A DNA stretch of 64,000 bases, taken from contig CP075495.1 in the NCBI GenBank assembly GCA_021613535.1, forward strand, positions 806,001 to 870,000, given 5' to 3'. The stretch comes from Adineta vaga (taxonomy: Eukaryota; Animalia; Rotifera). How positions within the stretch are numbered: position 1 is the first letter of the stretch; the number at the start of each line of letters is the position of its first letter. A program made the translations under genes and the position numbers. This document shows, piece by piece, positions 44,199 to 54,695 of the stretch. A model generated the notes under the pieces. The model ran no database searches, was not told the origin of the DNA, and worked only from the letters and a program-made list of their open reading frames with translations.

Positions 44199-45662
44199 TT
44201 GTTTTCGCGGATGTGCTTCAGCAATATGGCGATGTGTCTCAATTTCGTCGTGTTTATATATTTCTCATTACAACCCATTTTTTGCTGTTCTGTTTGCTCA
44301 AGGGTTGCTACAATATTTTTGCAACAGTTTTACTTTGTTTTCTCCGCAAAAAAAATACACTTTCTATGAAACAAAGCAGACGCGCAGTGCACGAGACTTC
44401 ATTGATAAAAAAATGAGTTGTGAAATCATGAGTAATGTATGTTTAACGATTACATAAAACAATGTAATATATTCGAATCATACAATGGTCTCTTCGAATT
44501 CTTGCTGAATTCAAAAGAAAAAAACCAGTTCATTTTCGAGTGAAATTATTGAGTCTATGGGTTTTCGGGCCTTTATTTATTATGCAGCATATTAACTGTT
44601 AAAAGCACGTGAAGATGCAAAGATTCAGCTTCTTCAGGATTAGTTGTATATGAGAGTATACGTATAAAGAAGAGTATTTGTCTGTTTATTCGTTATCCAT
44701 TCATTTCCTGTAGTAGCTAGGGTCACCAAACTTTCCATGACATTTTCGTATGTACAGGAAAAAGTCGAAAGGAAGTGGGAGACGGATGCCGGTCGAAATT
44801 TAACCCTATTTCTATTTGACTCATTTGATCGATCTTTAGAGTATCCATCTATTACTACTTTTTCACCCTGGTCTGGTTGTGTTACATGAAAGTGAGGACG
44901 TTTCACAAGTAATATACTCTCCCACTACCCGATATTTGATGAACTATAGCGCTTTATTATGGACGTGTGTGATTTATACACTACTACCATTATATTAATA
45001 AACAATTGTGTTGAGACAATGATGGTCGTAGTGTTATAAGCATGTCGGGTCAGTGTCTGATGAGAGGGTAGAAATCGTGAGAGAGAATGATAAAAATGGT
45101 TAGTAGCAGGAAGTGTATATAAGATTGTTTATCTTTATTGAATAGAAAAGTTTGTTTTGTCTAGACCCATATACCCAGGGTTGTATGAAAAATATCGTTC
45201 CTTTTTTATTTTGAAGACAGAAAGAATTCAAAAAGACCATAGAGTCATTCGAATATATGTATTCTGATTTATTTCATAGTTCAACAGGCCACATATTAAA
45301 TTATCATGTTACTATTCAAAACCAAATATATCGATTGAAGTATAGAAGTGATGTAATGATCCACAAGACTTGAATGCATTTAATAACCAATGATTCATGC
45401 AAGTAATCTTCTTTATTATAGTATGATTTACGAGCGTTTCATTGTAGTCGTTGTATATCATAATATTGTTTTGAGTTTAGTTTTTGGTCACAAAGAGCAA
45501 CTCGTCGTTTTGTATATTCGAATATACAGTACTTCATTACAATATGAGGCTATATTTGTTGGATAACTAGTTTCTCACATAGTGAAGAAAATTTCTGCAT
45601 ACTTGTACTGAAATAAAAGTATGATTTTAACGATTTTTCAACAGATAATGCTTATTATAATT

Positions 45663-45750
45663 TCAGATCGACGAATACGAGATCCGTATACAGCTGTATG
45701 TCTTTGTGTATAATCATGAATATATACGATCGTGTCGTTTTGATCTTGAA
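45663..45750. mobile_element. Tiny degenerate inverted-repeat element (MITE relic)
   Basis: AGATCGACGAATACGA...TACGATCGTGTCGTTTTGATCT imperfect inverted ends, loosely related to the termini of the 46141 element. Confidence 0.3.
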
Positions 45751-46140
45751 ACCATCGTGAGGAATATTCAATGTATATGTGATATTCAATTATTGATTAA
45801 AATAATTAAATAGTTAATTTAAAGAAAGAGAAAAGATGAACAGAACACAAGTCGACAAATATGGAATTGACATACACCCATGCTTTCTATTGTGACGCAG
45901 TCATTGAAAAATAGGCAATATGGATACCTGTAAACAATAACATACGCTCACGATATGGCTGCAATACAAAGACACATGATACAATAGAAATCGTCATTAT
46001 ATTTTTGATTTATATAATCTAAGGCGTTCGTCTCAACACATTGAAAGTTTGATTGGACTTTTGAAAATTATAAATATCTTTACTATAGTTTTATCTCTTT
46101 GTGATGATGTTATAATACAAGAAAAAAACACGATGAACTA

Positions 46141-46420
46141 CCCAGGACGATGCTTCGCGGGTACGGATACGCACGGAACCTGCCGGAAATCACGCCTTTC
46201 CGTGGATATTCCGGACAGTGGAAGCAGTATTCCGATCGGAATTTCTCGGGCTGTTCCGGTGAATTCCAATCGGAATTGTCGGAAAACGACTGGAACTTAC
46301 TGGAAGTTAGTCAGAAGCAAGCGGAAAAATCGAAAAATATCTGGTTCGGAATCCTGCTTCCATGAAATTGCCGGAATGTTCTGGTTCCGGCGGGATCCGG
46401 CTCGGATTTTTCGACCTGGG
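46141..46420. mobile_element. 280-bp GC-rich MITE, CCCAGG...CCTGGG termini with TA duplication (CMC/EnSpm-like)
   Basis: TA|CCCAGGACGA ... TCGACCTGGG|TA; many internal CCGGAA/TTCCGG repeats; GC far above flanks. Confidence 0.8.
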
Positions 46421-47514
46421 TACCGAAACGGCAAAAAATGAAGAGAATAAACCAAAAATAAAATATAATGATTCTTCTTGTGTTACATTCGTATTTCTTA
46501 TCAATTAGTATAAAAAATAGTCGAGAAATCATAAGACAAAAAATAATGTTGATTATGGAGTAATGTTACATCCATCGCTTATTTAGATTGCGATTTATTT
46601 TGTATTTAAACACCATCAACTGAGTCTAGGTAGATATCTTGTAGTCATTTATCGGCGTTCTTTCGATTTTCCACACTCGGCTGATCGATTGTCCGTCTCA
46701 CATCGATAATCTAATGTGAAACTAAATCTTTTCATTAATCGATGTTGTCGAACCTACTGGAAACTTCAAATAGAACATCAGATTAGAAACCATACTTATT
46801 GAAGAATAGTATTTTTCGATGAACATAGAGATAGGCTGCTCGGAATAATACAAATAGAGTTCGATGATGCTCACCTAGATTCAAATAAAACTAGTAATTT
46901 TACTGTAAGCAAAAGCTTCACTCAAAAGAGCATATTATATTTCACTCTCATCTATATCATCAAGATCAATTTGAAATGAAAATGTATAATGGATAGACTC
47001 AACTAAAAACGTGATTGAAGAATCATTGCTTTTCAGTATTTATCTATCGTACACAGTTTTTACCTGGATGAAAATCATTTATTCAAGTTCGATTCCACAA
47101 CAACATTACATGACATTCAGAATTCGATCGAAGATAAACAGGAGTTTCTATTATATCATTTGATTATATAATTGAATTCTATAATCCAGTTTATAAGAAA
47201 TATTTCAGACTTAGTGATACTTATTTACATCAACGACGTGCATTTTATTCTACTGAACAAATGATAGATACAGAATCAAAGACTACTATACCAAATCCTA
47301 TATTAAATTAAAAGTTTGTTGTTTTGAAATCAATAAAAACAATTACACATCCTCACTCACACCCTCAAGATAATATTCGTTTCTATTCGTTCAATATCTT
47401 GAAATAGGATGACTGCTCCAACTGCGTCGCAGTTACAATGCATTTCATCCCTGTAGTCATATTTCTCACACCATTCTTTCCCTACGATATCGATTCAATC
47501 TTTATTTTGATTAT

Positions 47515-48612
47515 TTATCCTTCAGTACAATCAATACTAAATTTAGTCCCATCAAAATCCATCGGTGTATCATCTCCATACATTTCTATTTGATTAATTA
47601 AAGTTTCAATTTGTTTTAATCTTTCAGTTGAATAATTTCTTTTGTCAAGAAAGTTCGTTTTATTCAGCAATTTTTTTGACCATGATAAATAATTTAAACT
47701 TTGTCGTGAATCTTCAATTGATGCAAATGCTTTTTGAACATAATAACTTGCAATATCTTTTGTTAATCGACTCAATAAATCTAATTCATGATCAAACATA
47801 AGAATTTTATCGATATAATTCAACGCCCAATCGATTTGAGTTAATAAATTACATGTAAAAACATAGATCGCATAAATATGTCTATTGTCGAATATTTGTG
47901 GTACAAGTCGACGACCAAGTGCACCTGTCGTAATCATAAAAATAGTTGTATTAGAATGTGATAATTGATTAATAAATTTCACACATGTATCGACTTTTGA
48001 AAATGTAAATAGAATCTGTTTTTGTTTATCATTCATTTGATAATCTTTCATTGTATTAGCAGAGAACGAACCGATTAAATTATCGATATCAAGATCTTTT
48101 CCATAAGAATAACGTGCAACTATATCGACTGAAGCTGTGGTATTAAAATAATGTTTTAATTGTCGATTATTTTGTGGATAACCAATATAAGCATCAAGCC
48201 AAATAATCACATGATCAGATATTGCTGGAAAGGAGTTGGATGGGTGATGTACATGATCATTCATGTAAAATTTACTTTCTTTTCTTGATCTGGATAATAA
48301 AATTTTTGTATCAAATTGAATTTTAGTAAATTGTTTATATAGAGAACGAATTCTTAATCTATAGAATCGAATAGTTTTAAAATAAGAATTCGATTGAATT
48401 TCATTAATATAAAATTTATCCAAAATAATATATTTATAAAATCGTGAATCGAAGATTTCTAATAGATATTGATTCATATCAATACAAAAATAATTACTAA
48501 TTAAATCATAAATAATTTCAACATCTAACATAAAAGATTCGATTTGTAATACAAATGTTTGATACATAAAATCAACGATAAATTCAATTGAGGAACATTT
48601 TTGTAAAGCCAT
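47515..48612 (-). CDS. PB1/beta-grasp-like N-domain plus pseudo-receiver domain protein (in-frame intron 48275-48225)
   Basis: N-term IEFIVDF...IYDLISNYF...LLEIFDSRFYKYIILD; receiver-like strands IIWLDAYIG, IFMITTGALG, IYAIYVFTC; helical C-terminus. Confidence 0.65.
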   Translation of the reverse strand: MALQKCSSIEFIVDFMYQTFVLQIESFMLDVEIIYDLISNYFCIDMNQYLLEIFDSRFYKYIILDKFYINEIQSNSYFKTIRFYRLRIRSLYKQFTKIQFDTKILLSRSRKESKFYMNDHVHHPSNSFPAISDHVIIWLDAYIGYPQNNRQLKHYFNTTASVDIVARYSYGKDLDIDNLIGSFSANTMKDYQMNDKQKQILFTFSKVDTCVKFINQLSHSNTTIFMITTGALGRRLVPQIFDNRHIYAIYVFTCNLLTQIDWALNYIDKILMFDHELDLLSRLTKDIASYYVQKAFASIEDSRQSLNYLSWSKKLLNKTNFLDKRNYSTERLKQIETLINQIEMYGDDTPMDFDGTKFSIDCTEG

Positions 48613-48904
48613 TTGTTTGTTAAAAATAAAACACGTTATGATAGAAAAACAAGAAAAAGAATATTCTCGTTTTTTTGTTGTTCTGTTCTCTATTGGAAAA
48701 TATTAGCCTTTTTTTCTTTCGTTCTTCCGTCTTATGTCGTCGATAGGATGTTTTTGCTTGTTGGAAATCTTTTTTCTTTTCTTTTTTTTACCTAAACGGC
48801 AGATATCTCTTGTTGGTATTTATTGATGAGATGAGAAATCTATATTCAATCTCATCTGAAGTATCAAGACAATCAGAACAAAAATTCTTTTCAAAAGTTC
48901 AACT

Positions 48905-51900
48905 ATGACTGATACGATAATTGAACATATCAATCATCCAAAACGTCTTTCATCTTCAGCTCCTAATTTAGTTAAATTTAATTCAACAACAACATTTAGT
49001 GATGTTCGAACTTATATTGAAAATGATAATGATGGTTTTTTAAAGGAATATGATTATGATGTTCAAATCTATAATAAAGACGTTGGCATGTATATCATCT
49101 TTAATGACAAATATATAGAACAATATCGTCCATTTGATTTAATTCTTCCAACAACAACAACAAAAGAACAATTAATGTCGAATTTAATTAAATTAAAAGT
49201 TATTTGGAACAAGAAAATTATGTCGGAAGCAATTTCAAGTATATTGAAGGAATTTATATTTAGAAAACAAACTTGTTCTTCGAATTTTTTAGATCCTTTA
49301 GGTGTATTTCCTTTGCCACAGATGACACCAAATCAAACTATGTCCAGTATTTTAGATGTATTCAATTCTGAAATGCCTCCAGTTATAAATTCATCTTTGA
49401 CAACGAATTTTATCTTATCACCATTATGTGATTTACTTGATGATCTTGAAGAAAATGATCGTGATGTTATGAATACAACAGACATAGGTAATATAATTAT
49501 GAAAGAAGATTTCATTTTTGTTAATATGTACAAATATTTTTCATTTAATTAGGATTTAATAATATCACTGATAGTAAGTCTTGACTTCAATAATCATTAT
49601 GATGATATCTTTCTTATGTACGATAGATGGTTCAGATACAACGTCTTTGCCTTATATTAGCAGTGGGACTGTAACTCTCTCTGACCTGCAAACAATAATG
49701 GAAATAAATGATTCAGATTCATCTATACCAACTCTCCTGTTGCTGATTGTATGTGATCTATTTTCGATGATCAACCATTATTTATGTTTGTTTTTAGATG
49801 TTGAAAAAAGTATTCAACAGACTGTCCAGGTAATTAAGCCAATACACAATCAATTAGATGTCAATATTGATGATATTTCATCAACATTCAGTAAATTGAA
49901 TTATGAAAATATTTCTTCAATCCTTCGTTCATATTTTAATATCTTTTCTAGAAGAATCAGCGTCGAGATTTATTCAATGTCGATTGAAAAATTTAGGCAA
50001 TACTTGTTATTTAAATGTTATTTTACAAATGTTCGCTCATACACCATTGTTAAAGGATTTGATTGTTCAAAGTAATCATCGTGAAACATGTACGTATATT
50101 TTTTCGATTTTACCAAAATGAAACTAAGTTGGTACTATTTAGGTCGACGAAATCCTGTTTGTGCCTTTTGTTTAATCGTACAAACATTAAAAGACATGTA
50201 TAAGATGTCTGAAACCAATCAAAATTATGTATATGCACCGAAATCGTTCCAAGATAAATTGGAACTATTGTCATCTCAATTCAAGGGAAAGATGCAACAA
50301 GATTGCCATGAACTTTTAATGAGTTTATTCAACAATATTGATGAACCATCGATTCTATCTAAAGCTTTTGGATTTTATACTCAACGTATTATTCGTTGTA
50401 ATCGCTGTAACAATGGATCAAATCCATCAGAACCTCAAATGATAATCGAATGTAATTTATCTAAAAAACCCTGTGACCTGGTCGATTGTCTGAAATAGTT
50501 ATTTTGACAAGGAATTGTTAAACAATGACGATGTATATATTGTCCAACATGTCAAAGTAAACAGAATGGGAATATTCGAACAGAAATCTGTTCATTACCA
50601 CCAATATTATTAGTCTCATTGAAACGATTTGTAAACCATCAAACAAAACTTGTTTCTCCAGTGACCTACAATGAAATCTTACATTTTGATGACAAATCGT
50701 TGATAGATGGTACTGATGAACAAAAGACATATCATCTCTATGCATTTATTATTCATATTGGAAATGATCTCGACAATGGTCATTATATTTGTTATGTTAG
50801 AAATGAATTGACCAATGAATGGTATGAAGCCAACGATGACTCGTTTCAGAAAGCTGAAAATGTATTTGACAAAAGGGAATCTGTTTATCTTTTATGTTAT
50901 ATACGATCAGATCTTAGTAAATTTGTGATTTTTGATCAATCGAATCTTACAAATACGTCAGGTATATAGCAATTGTCTAAGTTTTGTAGTTTTTTTAAAC
51001 TTATATTTTCAGATATACAAACCAAAGATCCATTGGATGAATTAAAGAAGAAAGTTAATTTTGATTTTTGTGAAGATATTTATCCTTATCAAAGACGTCA
51101 AGGAAAATGTGATGTCTTTGGAGAATTGGGTTCAAAACAGTAATATATTCTCTATGGATACGGAGTTATTACAAAGAAATGTTGATTTTTTATTTAGACT
51201 GAAACAACCAAGTTTTCTCTGGATCAAAGGAGAATTAAGTAAAGTACGCAAACCTAGTTATCCAAAATTAGAGGTAAGCTATTTTATTGATTACATTGAT
51301 AAAACAATCTTTTACTCTAGATAAGCATTCCTGTTGACTTTCAAAAATATAAATGGCTATTAAAAATAACCGTTGTTACAGAAATGAGTGGAAAGAATGG
51401 TATTTATTATTTACAACATGAGAAAAAATTCTTGGGAGATGATTCTCGTCGATTTGATGGTCCATTACTTAATTCAATCGAATTCGAAATAATATTTGAA
51501 AATTCGGGAAAACTAAGTTTCGTACCACTTTTTCATTCCAAACATCAAATAGAGAAGGTATTCGGAAAGGTTGGTACGAAAATCAGTTCACCCGAAGATT
51601 CTTTAGACGATATTTATCAGTAAGATGAAGTTTACTGAAACTATAAGTAATAAAATCTTTTTTTTCTCTGATATAGATTGCTTTTATGTGTTCTTAATGA
51701 AGGAAATTTAGTTGAAGCAAAAATTCTTGCATTAATACCATTTTATAATTCTTTTATGAAAAAATTTGTTTCAATGGAAAATTCCAGCGTATTAGTAACT
51801 GCGAAAAATCAAGGAATTGATTTAAAAAATTTCCAATTATTTTGTGAACTTTATATTGAAGATCATCGATTAAAATATTGTATTTCAAAATGTGCATTAC

Positions 51901-52172
51901 AAGGTTAGTAAGACGTTCTTTGCATACGATTAAAATATTGGTATATTACAGATAATGATGGCACGAAAAAGCAATCAAAACGAAAAATAGAAGGATCAAC
52001 AAAAGAAATTCGAAAGAAACGGAAGTCGTCGAATTCTGAAAAAAGTAAACAAGATGAAAATGAAGAAATTGAAATTGAAGATGGCGTATATCCAGTACCA
52101 AGGTACGATGATTACAAATACGAAAAAATCTTTCTATTTCTTCTTCCATTTAGTGATGATTCAAATGAATAA
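48905..52172 (+). CDS. PB1-like - USP deubiquitinase - Rel-homology-like domain - NLS fusion protein, multi-exon
   Basis: USP Cys box LKNLGNTCYLNVILQ (Cys codon 50005), QQDCHE, His box HIGNDLDNGHYICYVR, WYEANDD; exons 51013-51139, 51198-51273, 51321-51619, 51677-51903, 51952-52102, 52154-52172 give the RHD-like region and KRK...RKKRK; two compensating indels at about 50495-50541. Confidence 0.75.
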
Positions 52173-52481
52173 TAATCTTTTAAATCTTTTTTACGTCAAA
52201 TTGTGATGATCGAGTGTCGTTTTTTTTCCTTCTGTTCAAGTCTTATTATTAGTAATTCGAATAAAATCATCATAAAGGTTTTCTTCTACATAATTTTAAA
52301 TCAAAATAATCACTTGAAACATCTATCAACAAATCTTATGATTCATTCAGTAAACGAAATTCGATCTATTTTTTCTGCAAATAAATAGAATTTGTAATGT
52401 GATCATGCAATAAACTGTTTCTTTCATTTATACGGCAGAGAAAAAACATATTCTGAAAAAAGATCAAATCATTACTTGATC

Positions 52482-54695
52482 ATGTCGCATCAACGAAATT
52501 TCAAAAATTTACCTGTTGAAATTTTCCATATTCTATTTGATTACTTTTCAACACAAGAAATTCTTCGTACTTTTCTCAATATTAGTGATTATTTAAATGA
52601 TATTTTAAATGGTTATTCAAATTGGTCATTGAATTTCAAATCGATTTCACGAGATGATTTTGATTTTATTTGTCATCAAATTCAACCAGAAAAAGTCATT
52701 TCATTAACAATTTCTGATGATTGTGATACACCAGGTCAATCGGAATTATTCTTTTCTCGATTTCAACTTGAACAATTTGTTCATTTACGATGTTTGAGAT
52801 TGATAAATATTGAATTTGAATCATTAGAACATATTTTCACCAATTTACATAAACTAAAACAAATGAAATCGTTTTCATTTCATATTAATTCTATTACATA
52901 TAAATATTATGATAAGAAAATTAATTATTGGAGTAAATTAAAACGACTAAAGCCAACGATTCTCCATTCGTATGCACAAGTCATACCTCATTTAGATCGA
53001 TTAGAAACAGATAATCATACTGTTATATCACGTTTACCATCAATAAATCTTCGTTCTTTAAAAATATGTTTATTTTCTGCTAAGAAACTGAGAAGTATTA
53101 TGAATAAATTACCATATCTTAATTCACTTGATGTATCCCTTCAATTGACAAATGGAAATGATATGAATATTGATTTTGAATCATCTAAATTGACTCGACT
53201 TCACTTAAAAATCTATGGTGAGTTTGTCCCTATATGAGATTTTGTTTTATTCAAGTAATACTAATCTATTTCAGGTCATCAAGTGCAAGTATCGATGAAT
53301 CAAATGGAACAATTCCTTTCAAAATTCTCTTGTTTAAAATATCTTAAATTGATTTTAAAGGGTAAGGATGATCTTGTTGATGGATATCGATGGGAAATGT
53401 TAACAAATTCACTTGTTACATTCGACTTCAAATTTCATGTCGGTTATCGTGTATCACACGATTCTTTTCAAACATTGTTTTGGTTAGAACACAAACATTG
53501 GTATGTTGATTCCCAAAAGAATTGTTTATTCACAATACCTTATTTCTATCCTTCTGATATTACTATTAATACATATTCGTATCAAGCAGTTAACAAAACG
53601 GCTATAAAATATGTAACTTCAATAACCATTGATGATATTCCTAAAGGAATATCTTCTTATTTTACACATGTGAAAAAGTTGTGTCTTAATCGGTCATTTA
53701 CTCATCAAGACATTTTCTTTCTTGTGTCATTGAAACATGTAGAATCTTTATTATTATTTTCAATAACTGATCTATTAAAATTTCAACCCTATGAAATAAC
53801 ACTTCCTAAGTTATCTGAATTAATTATTGAAAATACAATCAAATTCGATGATATTATGCAAATGAAAACTACTACACAAATAAAACAAATTCAAATATTA
53901 AATGTATCAATAGATCATGTCAATTCACATTTCATCTTAAAAGGATTATTTTATTGTTATCCTCATGTCAAACATCTTCGAGTACAATTACCACCTTTTA
54001 TTTCCGTGAAGACATTCATTGATAGTCTTAATATATTTACATATACATCAAATATTTCCTTTTTATCACTTGATCGTTATCCAGATTTCGATTATGTTAT
54101 TGAAAACTCTAAACGACGTGAATTGTCATATCGACTTAAACGAAGTAAATTCTCATGTGGACTTAAACGATCATTCAACAATCTTATTGGAAAAGATTCT
54201 CATTTTTGGATCGCACCACAGGTAAAGCTTTTTTTTCTCCTAATAGAATTCAATGCTTTGTTTTCTATTTAAAAGCACTTACAATCATATTCAACTGTAC
54301 AATGGCCATCAGGATTCGAAAATTCTCGACTAATTATAGAATCTTTTATTTCTGAAGTCGAATATTCAGAACCTTTGTTACAAATACTACGTGCAATAGC
54401 ATTCATTTGTATAATATCTATGCCTTACTTCTGCAAGTTTAATCCTACAGTTGTTCCATTTTCATTCAATTATTTCATTCTGAAGATATTTATAACATTT
54501 TGGTATGTTATTTTATTCATACTTGCATTAATGAACTTTCTTATGTGTAAAAGAATTTTTAATTGGATATGTTATAAGTTACCTTCACGAATTCGCTCGT
54601 TTATTCCAGTTTTTTGTATTTTTATATGTTTTGCATGTATTTTTAATCGTGATCTATTTACGATCATCCGTCAACTATTTGATTTTGTTTTTTAA
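52482..54695 (+). CDS. F-box/LRR-like protein with C-terminal TM segments, copy 1 (3 exons)
   Basis: F-box LPVEIFHILFDYF; Leu-rich repeats; DGYRWE; hydrophobic last exon. Confidence 0.8.

Follow-up and report, generated by a model that had tools for sequence, protein, structure and literature searches.

Rel/NF-kB transcription factors are defined by a two-part domain, the second half of which makes the dimer. Here we analyse a pair of divergent genes, A and B, in a 64,000-nucleotide stretch of the genome of the bdelloid rotifer Adineta vaga (hereafter the window; G000:C2:806001-870000, in an assembly of 100.8 Mb on six contigs; all positions below are window positions unless a contig or locus is named). 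The start codons of the two genes lie head-to-head and 292 bp apart, close to the divergent spacing of about 290 bp given in an earlier note on this DNA, and their products begin with N-terminal domains (N-domains) that profile comparison identifies as homologous and that are predicted to adopt a PB1-like fold. Gene A continues into a domain termed WLD; gene B carries a USP deubiquitinase (DUB) domain and a domain, X, that we describe as Rel-like. On balance, we consider it probable that genes A and B belong to a family of divergent PB1-like/Rel-like gene pairs specific to bdelloids, whose products would pair through their N-domains.

The N-domain finds its closest structural counterparts in PB1 domains, such as those of NBR1, p62, Par6/aPKC, p40phox/p67phox and MEKK3/MAP2K5. 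These share its beta-grasp topology and size and are the best structural matches of the family (Z 10-12.3, root-mean-square deviation (r.m.s.d.) 1.6-2.4 over about 80 residues), and the family combines two types, as heterotypic PB1 pairs do. The rotifer family differs in being negative for the Pfam PB1 profile, in carrying the domain always at the N-terminus and in residing in promoter-sharing gene pairs, where it is joined to Rel-like, USP or WLD domains and not to kinases or scaffolds. The Rel homology region of NF-kB, Rel, NFAT and TonEBP resembles the X domain in that X superposes on its N-terminal specificity subdomain (p65 residues 19-186), has a motif that may correspond to the Rel recognition loop and is followed by a basic cluster like the Rel nuclear localisation signal (NLS). 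In contrast to the Rel proteins, to which its sequence identity is 12-15%, the rotifer family has no IPT/TIG subdomain and no Pfam RHD match, bears a PB1-like head and, in gene B, an inserted deubiquitinase, and is so far known from bdelloids only.

In their arrangement, the rotifer genes recall the paired NLR genes of plants (sensor/executor pairs such as RRS1/RPS4), which are divergent, have a short common promoter and a homologous N-terminal interaction domain, and are duplicated as units. The proteins, however, are unrelated, NB-ARC domains are lacking and the lineage is animal, and any functional analogy is tentative. A further parallel is IkB/NF-kB, in which, as here, a Rel-like factor has a partner without a DNA-binding domain encoded next to it. 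Ankyrin repeats are missing from gene A, the contact there runs from ankyrin to RHD/NLS whereas a PB1-PB1 contact is proposed here, and at other rotifer loci both partners are Rel-like.

According to two reviews, canonical Toll-like receptors are lacking in A. vaga, and one of the two adds that no rotifer immune pathways had been reported (PMC8609888, PMC6043800). Our literature search turned up no description of a rotifer PB1-Rel family, which is not proof of absence.

Homology of the N-domains of genes A and B

Each N-domain is encoded at the start of its gene, on either side of a short common region:

47515..48612, minus strand: gene A, single-exon coding sequence of 365 amino acids (aa; stop included); open reading frame (ORF), with RNA contigs contiguous over 47470-48403
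48313..48594, minus strand: predicted PB1-like N-domain of gene A, alpha clade; N-domain hidden Markov model (HMM) E 4e-28, alpha in tree
48613..48904, no strand: inter-start-codon region of 292 bp, presumed bidirectional promoter
48905..49487, plus strand: first coding exon of gene B; ORF, RNA contig 48844-49217, 3' end a putative GT donor
48905..49231, plus strand: predicted PB1-like N-domain of gene B, beta clade; N-domain HMM E 4e-29, beta in tree

BLASTP of the gene A against the gene B N-terminus gave no significant match (E 0.65-2.3). Alignments restricted to orthologues were then compared by hhalign, with gene A, Rotaria and A. ricciae sequences in one (A3) and gene B, A. ricciae (two copies) and Rotaria sequences in the other (A2). 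The two aligned over 47 columns (87.8% probability, E 3e-6), which bears out the common N-terminal pattern that the earlier note had described. Against the score of 33.9, 200 column shuffles of A2 reached 19.8 at most (median 10.9) and a reversed profile 10.3; since these controls fall far below the real score, composition is not the cause of the match. Deeper clade profiles of about 40 sequences each aligned at 97.5% (E 8e-12), and an HMM built from one clade picks up the other, the alpha HMM matching gene B at 1.4e-5. On these sequence comparisons, the N-domains of genes A and B are homologous and their likeness is not due to chance.

A joint profile (A4) detected seven intact and three broken N-domain copies in the A. 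vaga genome and 83 representative proteins in a library of 1.84 billion proteins. The domain was N-terminal in all 83, one of which is a cadherin false positive, and the named members of the family are all bdelloid. A word-indexed protein search with P0052 returned three close relatives only. In a tree of 103 N-domains, two clades were separated, alpha, which includes gene A, and beta, which includes gene B. The gene B N-domain is kept in the A. ricciae and Rotaria orthologues, a protein search placed the orthologues of gene A in bdelloids only, and the public proteins that match the locus all come from bdelloid rotifers (Adineta, Rotaria).

Recurrence of alpha/beta pairs

Each fetched locus was scanned in six frames with the N-domain HMM. 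At nine of eleven loci, spread over two bdelloid families, a second N-domain was found on the opposite strand and immediately upstream, giving a head-to-head pair. The earlier note had named a lack of recurrent head-to-head pairing among the results that would refute its proposal, and this refutation did not come about. The pair loci and the domain combinations of their two genes are:

Window, A. vaga: alpha-WLD with beta-USP-X
L015 and L020, A. ricciae, two copies, pair 270 bp apart: alpha-WLD with beta-USP-X
L017, Rotaria magnacalcarata, pair about 1.7 kb apart: alpha-WLD with beta-USP-X, the X part lying beyond the fetched stretch
L031 and L032, A. vaga contigs 3 and 6: alpha-X with beta-X
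L035, Rotaria sp. Silwood2: alpha-X with beta-X
L036, A. steineri: alpha-X with beta-X
L037, Logan (metagenome) contig: alpha-WLD with beta-X, a combination probably also present at L033

All nine clear pairs consist of one alpha and one beta N-domain, as placed in the tree. The beta gene of a pair carries the Rel-like domain, and the alpha gene carries either a Rel-like or a WLD domain. A. vaga and A. ricciae are collinear across the whole block, so that conservation between these two species says little by itself; with Rotaria, only the pair is held in common with the window, and the neighbouring genes differ. The pattern described in the earlier note largely holds, and it reaches further than that note could tell.

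Two further A. vaga loci show related arrangements. L033 (G000:C4:13954799-13957493) has a gene of 249 aa with an alpha PB1-like and a WLD domain, and a head-to-head partner whose later exons match the Rel-like domain (E 1e-12 to 1e-21; loop R-M-R-Y-K-S-D). The first exon of this partner looks N-domain-like by eye, at E 0.1 only, and the locus was left out of the clear pairs. At L034 (G000:C1:14561705-14562683), a beta-type N-domain is split over two frames; weak matches to Rel-like exons come after it, the upstream side lacks an alpha partner, and the copy may be a decayed orphan. Of the eleven loci, the two without a clear pair are L033 and L038, the latter a metagenome contig of 4.4 kb that was too short to judge.

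Predicted PB1-like fold of the N-domain

The fold was modelled on P0030, a Rotaria protein of 358 aa that consists of an alpha N-domain and an X domain, using AlphaFold2 (AF2) with a 93-row alignment (A5). The mean predicted local distance difference test (pLDDT) score of the model was 77.9; residues 1-85 scored above 92, residues 150-345 mostly 80-96 and the linker at 91-144 less than 50. In this model the N-domain is a beta-grasp of roughly 90 aa with b-b-a-b-b-a-b topology.

The P0030 model was aligned to each of 48,161 PDB representatives. The best match of the N-domain was the PB1 domain of NBR1 (Z 12.3, r.m.s.d. 1.6 Å, 81 of 86 residues), and the PB1 domains of MAP2K5, MEKK3, Cdc24, Par6, PKC/p62 and p67phox scored Z 9.8-11.2. 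Ubiquitin, SUMO, UBX and RBD domains ranked below these, at Z 8.2-9.1. Foldseek with the same model also placed PB1 domains at the top, and among the ESM-atlas neighbours rotifer hypothetical clusters came first and PB1 proteins next. The family-member model thus supports a PB1-like fold for the N-domains, as the earlier note had supposed, and the gene A N-domain, which belongs to the same clade as P0030, would share it. A genome-wide scan with the Pfam PB1 profile (PF00564) gave 13 matches elsewhere in A. vaga and none at the family loci.

PB1 domains of type A carry an acidic OPCA motif and those of type B a conserved basic residue on the first strand. In the rotifer family, an acidic cluster follows strand 3 and precedes helix 2 in both clades; the strand 1-2 hairpin has basic residues more often in the beta than in the alpha clade. 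The strand 3/strand 4/helix 2 region, in which the acidic cluster falls, is presumably where the OPCA motif lies. Because the cluster is common to both clades, a clean acid/base complementarity between alpha and beta is not evident. As the PB1 and RHD sequence profiles both miss the family, we use the terms PB1-like and Rel-like and do not assign the domains to these families as members.

The Rel-like domain of gene B

Gene B runs from a beta PB1-like domain through a USP and a Rel-like domain to a basic, NLS-like tail. Its 3' part comprises:

51013..51139, plus strand: Rel-like domain exon 1, with recognition-loop-like motif; RNA joints, X-domain HMM, alignment A8
51198..51273, plus strand: Rel-like domain exon 2; RNA joints, alignment A8
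51321..51619, plus strand: Rel-like domain exon 3; RNA joints, X-domain HMM E 1e-12, hhalign against group 1
51677..51903, plus strand: Rel-like domain exon 4, with 44% identity to A. ricciae; RNA joints, X-domain HMM E 1e-14
51952..52172, plus strand: C-terminal tail in two exons, 51952-52102 and 52154-52172; RNA joints

X is a beta-rich domain of roughly 200 aa, whose two main groups are homologous by hhalign (97.3%, E 2e-11, 173 columns). The C-terminal exons of gene B and its orthologues aligned with group 1 over 121 columns (77.9%, E 1.8e-5) and more weakly with group 2 (E 6e-4). In the P0030 model, the X domain (residues 155-352) matched p65 (6ggr_A, chain residues 19-186) with Z 11.0 and an r.m.s.d. 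of 3.2 over 139 residues. Other matches were RelA/c-Rel (10.8), p65 (10.5), p52 (10.3), p50 (9.3) and TonEBP (9.0), and no non-Rel fold occurred among the matches with a Z of at least 8.2. Foldseek ranked NFAT, p65 and c-Rel first. We conclude, indirectly and by way of this family domain, that the C-terminus of gene B is probably Rel-homology-like; the Rel-like domain named in the earlier note is supported to that extent.

The structural match to p65 ends at about residue 186-190 and so takes in only the N-terminal, DNA-contacting half. No IPT/TIG dimerisation subdomain was found, and only basic and low-complexity tails follow the X domain. Basic, NLS-like clusters lie directly after it in gene B and in several paralogues; in the gene B translation, a lysine/arginine-rich NLS-like stretch precedes the stop codon. 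The recognition loop of Rel proteins reads R-x-R-Y-x-C-E. At what may be the equivalent place, where the X domain begins, most members of alignment A8 carry the motif R-x-x-Y-x-[S/C]-[D/E]. A scan of the A. vaga genome with the Pfam RHD profile gave no match anywhere and had no positive control.

The WLD domain of gene A

Downstream of its alpha-type PB1-like domain, gene A encodes a linker, the WLD domain and a helical tail:

47578..48216, minus strand: WLD domain, gene A residues about 133-345; conserved block in alignment A1

WLD has at least 101 matches in the A. vaga genome, and its nearest atlas clusters are rotifer-only hypothetical proteins, one of which carries ADP-ribosyltransferase (ART) domains. 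Judged by sequence, WLD is a large rotifer-only domain family. Some copies form small tandem clusters, and others open ORFs that are 600-1300 aa long (example sites are G000:C5:5559513-5560154, C2:4656473-4657165 and C6:13039335-13039679), and an ORF with ART and TPR domains lies near one WLD copy (L032, 5155-6834).

The earlier note had read this part of gene A as receiver-like in fold, with T/G where the phospho-Asp would stand. Pfam gave no match of any kind to gene A at E up to 1, receiver and ankyrin included, and no ankyrin match in nine relatives. The single-sequence AF2 model of gene A reached a pLDDT of 43, too poor to use, and a structure search with it returned generic three-helix bundles only, at residues 273-346. 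Of the earlier account, the receiver fold is no more than putative; the N-domain, USP, Rel-like domain and pairing are supported.

The deubiquitinase domain of gene B

The USP domain that the earlier note saw in gene B was recovered with PF00443 on three exon pieces (profile positions 1-37, 47-139 and 156-254), with both the Cys box and the His box present:

49952..50089, plus strand: USP Cys-box exon; PF00443 positions 1-37, RNA joint 50089 to 50143, 5' end per P0017
50143..50961, plus strand: USP core exon with His box; PF00443 positions 47-139 and 156-254, RNA joints at both ends

The A. ricciae orthologue of gene B matches PF00443 over its full length (157 bits). Most members of the N-domain/X family are without a USP domain. 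The gene B exons were searched singly, with a database model (P0017) and the A. ricciae orthologue (P0016) as full-length stand-ins.

Transcription and flanking sequence

The RNA contigs came from four runs labelled only as probable RNA; as the contigs contain spliced joints, the runs really are RNA. Genes A and B are both covered by contigs of the same runs. The gene A mRNA is unspliced across 47984-48310. In gene B, a contig starts by 48844, inside the 292-bp region and ahead of the ATG at 48905 (plus strand), and the contigs support a stop codon at 52170-52172. They also define seven GT..AG introns, at 50090-50142, 50962-51012, 51140-51197, 51274-51320, 51620-51676, 51904-51951 and 52103-52153. 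The public model P0017 (48905-54272) deviates in detail in the first coding exon and, despite the RNA-backed stop, fuses gene B with downstream F-box/LRR-like ORFs (52476-54272).

Within the 292-bp region, TTGGAAA occurs at 48693-48699 and 48761-48767; GGAAA is the core of NFAT and Rel half-sites. The density of TTGGAAA between paired genes is 2.2 per kb against a background of 0.41 per kb, for a motif picked post hoc. It also occurs in the intergenic regions of L015, L017, L032, L033 and L035, of which orthologous promoters are not independent. A second word, GTTGGAAA, occurs 7 times in 5.4 kb of paired-gene intergenic regions, against a background of 0.1 per kb. A-runs dominated the k-mer search of these regions.

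On the 3' side of gene A, a remnant of a further N-domain was found:

47040..47308, plus strand: frameshifted relic of a second beta-type N-domain exon; profile matches in two frames

The relic sits shortly beyond the 3' end of gene A and faces that gene. Across three frames it has 47-52% identity with the A. ricciae gene B N-domain, and it has no counterpart within the collinear A. ricciae block. Farther out, the segment at 46138-46424 has a G+C content of 0.40 against about 0.29 and is a dispersed repeat of about 285 bp, with at least 60 copies of 68-97% identity on all six contigs. An Rfam scan of 44500-49000 gave no match, the repeat included. The repeat probably represents a short non-autonomous element that has inserted between gene A and the conserved gene that comes next.

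A proposed pairing mechanism and its alternatives

We propose that genes A and B are co-expressed from their common 292-bp promoter region and that their products would join by way of their PB1-like domains, alpha to beta. With its dimerisation half missing, the Rel-like domain leaves the N-domain as the obvious dimeriser, and alpha/beta pairing would take the place of the IPT half. The Rel-like domain of gene B would bind DNA. For gene A, which has no DNA-binding domain, a role as regulatory or adaptor partner is proposed, through which the factor would be connected to the large family of WLD-domain proteins. In other pairs both partners are Rel-like, so that the ancestral logic would be closer to that of a p50/p65 heterodimer than to that of an inhibitor and its factor, and the alpha-X/beta-X pairs may act as heterodimers of the p50/p65 type. 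The family as a whole is probably a lineage-specific, heterodimeric Rel-like regulator. A more far-reaching version holds that PB1-like domains replaced the IPT half in bdelloids to form a two-gene, promoter-sharing, obligately heterodimeric alpha/beta system of Rel-like transcription factors, and that in some pairs, this one included, the alpha gene has had WLD swapped in for its DNA-binding domain and the beta gene has gained a DUB, the pair being wired to the greatly expanded WLD/ADP-ribosyltransferase/TPR family as a lineage-specific stress or immune pathway. This version is possible, and we put it forward tentatively, with more doubt than confidence.

Several results weigh against the family reading with which we began. 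The usable fold model is of the paralogue P0030 and not of gene A or gene B itself. Pfam PB1 (PF00564) matched neither gene A, nor gene B exon 1, nor any of 20 family proteins. Pfam RHD_DNA_bind had no match in the family proteins, and a PDB sequence search with profile A8 returned noise and no Rel protein, so that the assignment draws on fold and short motifs. The link of gene B to the X domain is of moderate strength (the 77.9% hhalign probability given above), and in gene B and its orthologues the R, C and D of the loop motif are kept and the Y is lost. WLD has no sequence match in Pfam, NCBIfam, PADLOC or PDB. The nine pairs go back to a small number of ancient duplications in which a pair was copied whole, and so do not count as nine independent events. 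Finally, the USP frame of gene B is broken at 50494-50538, where 15 codons lie in frame +1 and three stops in frame 0; if the break is real, the Rel-like part would not be translated.

That break could mean that gene B is a decaying pseudogene in this genome and that the pair is no longer functional here. The three in-frame stops and the two compensating 1-base shifts speak for decay, as does the public gene model, which must skip the region; P0017 leaves out the break and parts of the USP domain, although RNA contigs run unspliced through 50550-50957 and support continuous USP exons. Yet, read in their own frame, the 15 shifted codons remain conserved with A. ricciae, and the exons downstream are open and conserved, with RNA that shows correct GT..AG splicing. 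The two shifts cancel each other, and the places where they fall, one AAA and one TATATA, are short A or TA runs of the kind in which consensus errors would arise. We think an assembly error more likely than decay, although no RNA contig covers the break itself, and we regard a dead gene B as quite improbable. A different doubt concerns the Rel-like sandwich, which might no longer bind DNA and might instead bind protein, the family being a cytoplasmic ubiquitin-signalling module of PB1 scaffold and DUB. The USP domain of gene B, its degenerate loop motif and the lack of a Rel sequence signature by HMM would fit such a module. It is, however, distinctly unlikely, as most members have no USP domain and most keep R-x-x-Y-x-[S/C]-[D/E] at the likely position of the Rel recognition loop, with basic NLS-like clusters right after the domain in gene B and several paralogues.

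In the version of the earlier note, gene A is a signal-sensing pseudo-receiver that holds gene B inactive until release, in the manner of IkB. Its pairing with a Rel-like gene and its lack of a DNA-binding domain agree with this, as do alternating strand and helix elements at gene A residues 138-265 in the low-confidence model. The search at E up to 1, however, found neither receiver nor ankyrin, and four other pairs have an alpha partner that carries the Rel-like domain too, so that inhibition is not the general logic of the family. WLD, with its at least 101 copies, some of them heading ART/TPR-type proteins, fits an adaptor domain better than a receiver. With two Rel-like partners in other pairs and the receiver fold unproven, we rate an IkB-like gene A low and think it improbable. 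The pairs could also be the legacy of an ancient inverted duplication of the first exon and promoter, with linkage kept by the common promoter and with N-domains that bind other partners, for example canonical PB1 scaffolds or ubiquitin-pathway proteins, and not each other. Candidate partners exist among the 13 canonical PB1 matches elsewhere in the genome, and the acidic cluster of both clades leaves no clean acid/base complementarity in evidence. Such a legacy is nevertheless unlikely: one alpha and one beta domain are strictly combined in all nine pairs, through several duplications and in both Adineta and Rotaria, and the Rel-like domain is without the half by which it would usually dimerise, the N-domain being the obvious substitute. 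We keep to the reading of genes A and B as a member of a family of divergent pairs whose products would join through their PB1-like domains.

Significance for bdelloid signalling

The family appears to keep only the DNA-reading half of Rel and to carry a PB1-like module at its N-terminus, and the head-to-head order of the genes for the presumed subunits has outlasted duplications and is kept in several bdelloid genera. Should the subunits indeed pair by their PB1-like domains, bdelloids would have found an independent solution to Rel dimerisation, and the locus would show obligate partner genes tied together by a common promoter, which is rare in animals. The genes of the family are currently annotated as hypothetical proteins. 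The locus offers an entry point into bdelloid signalling, in which immune and stress pathways are largely uncharted.

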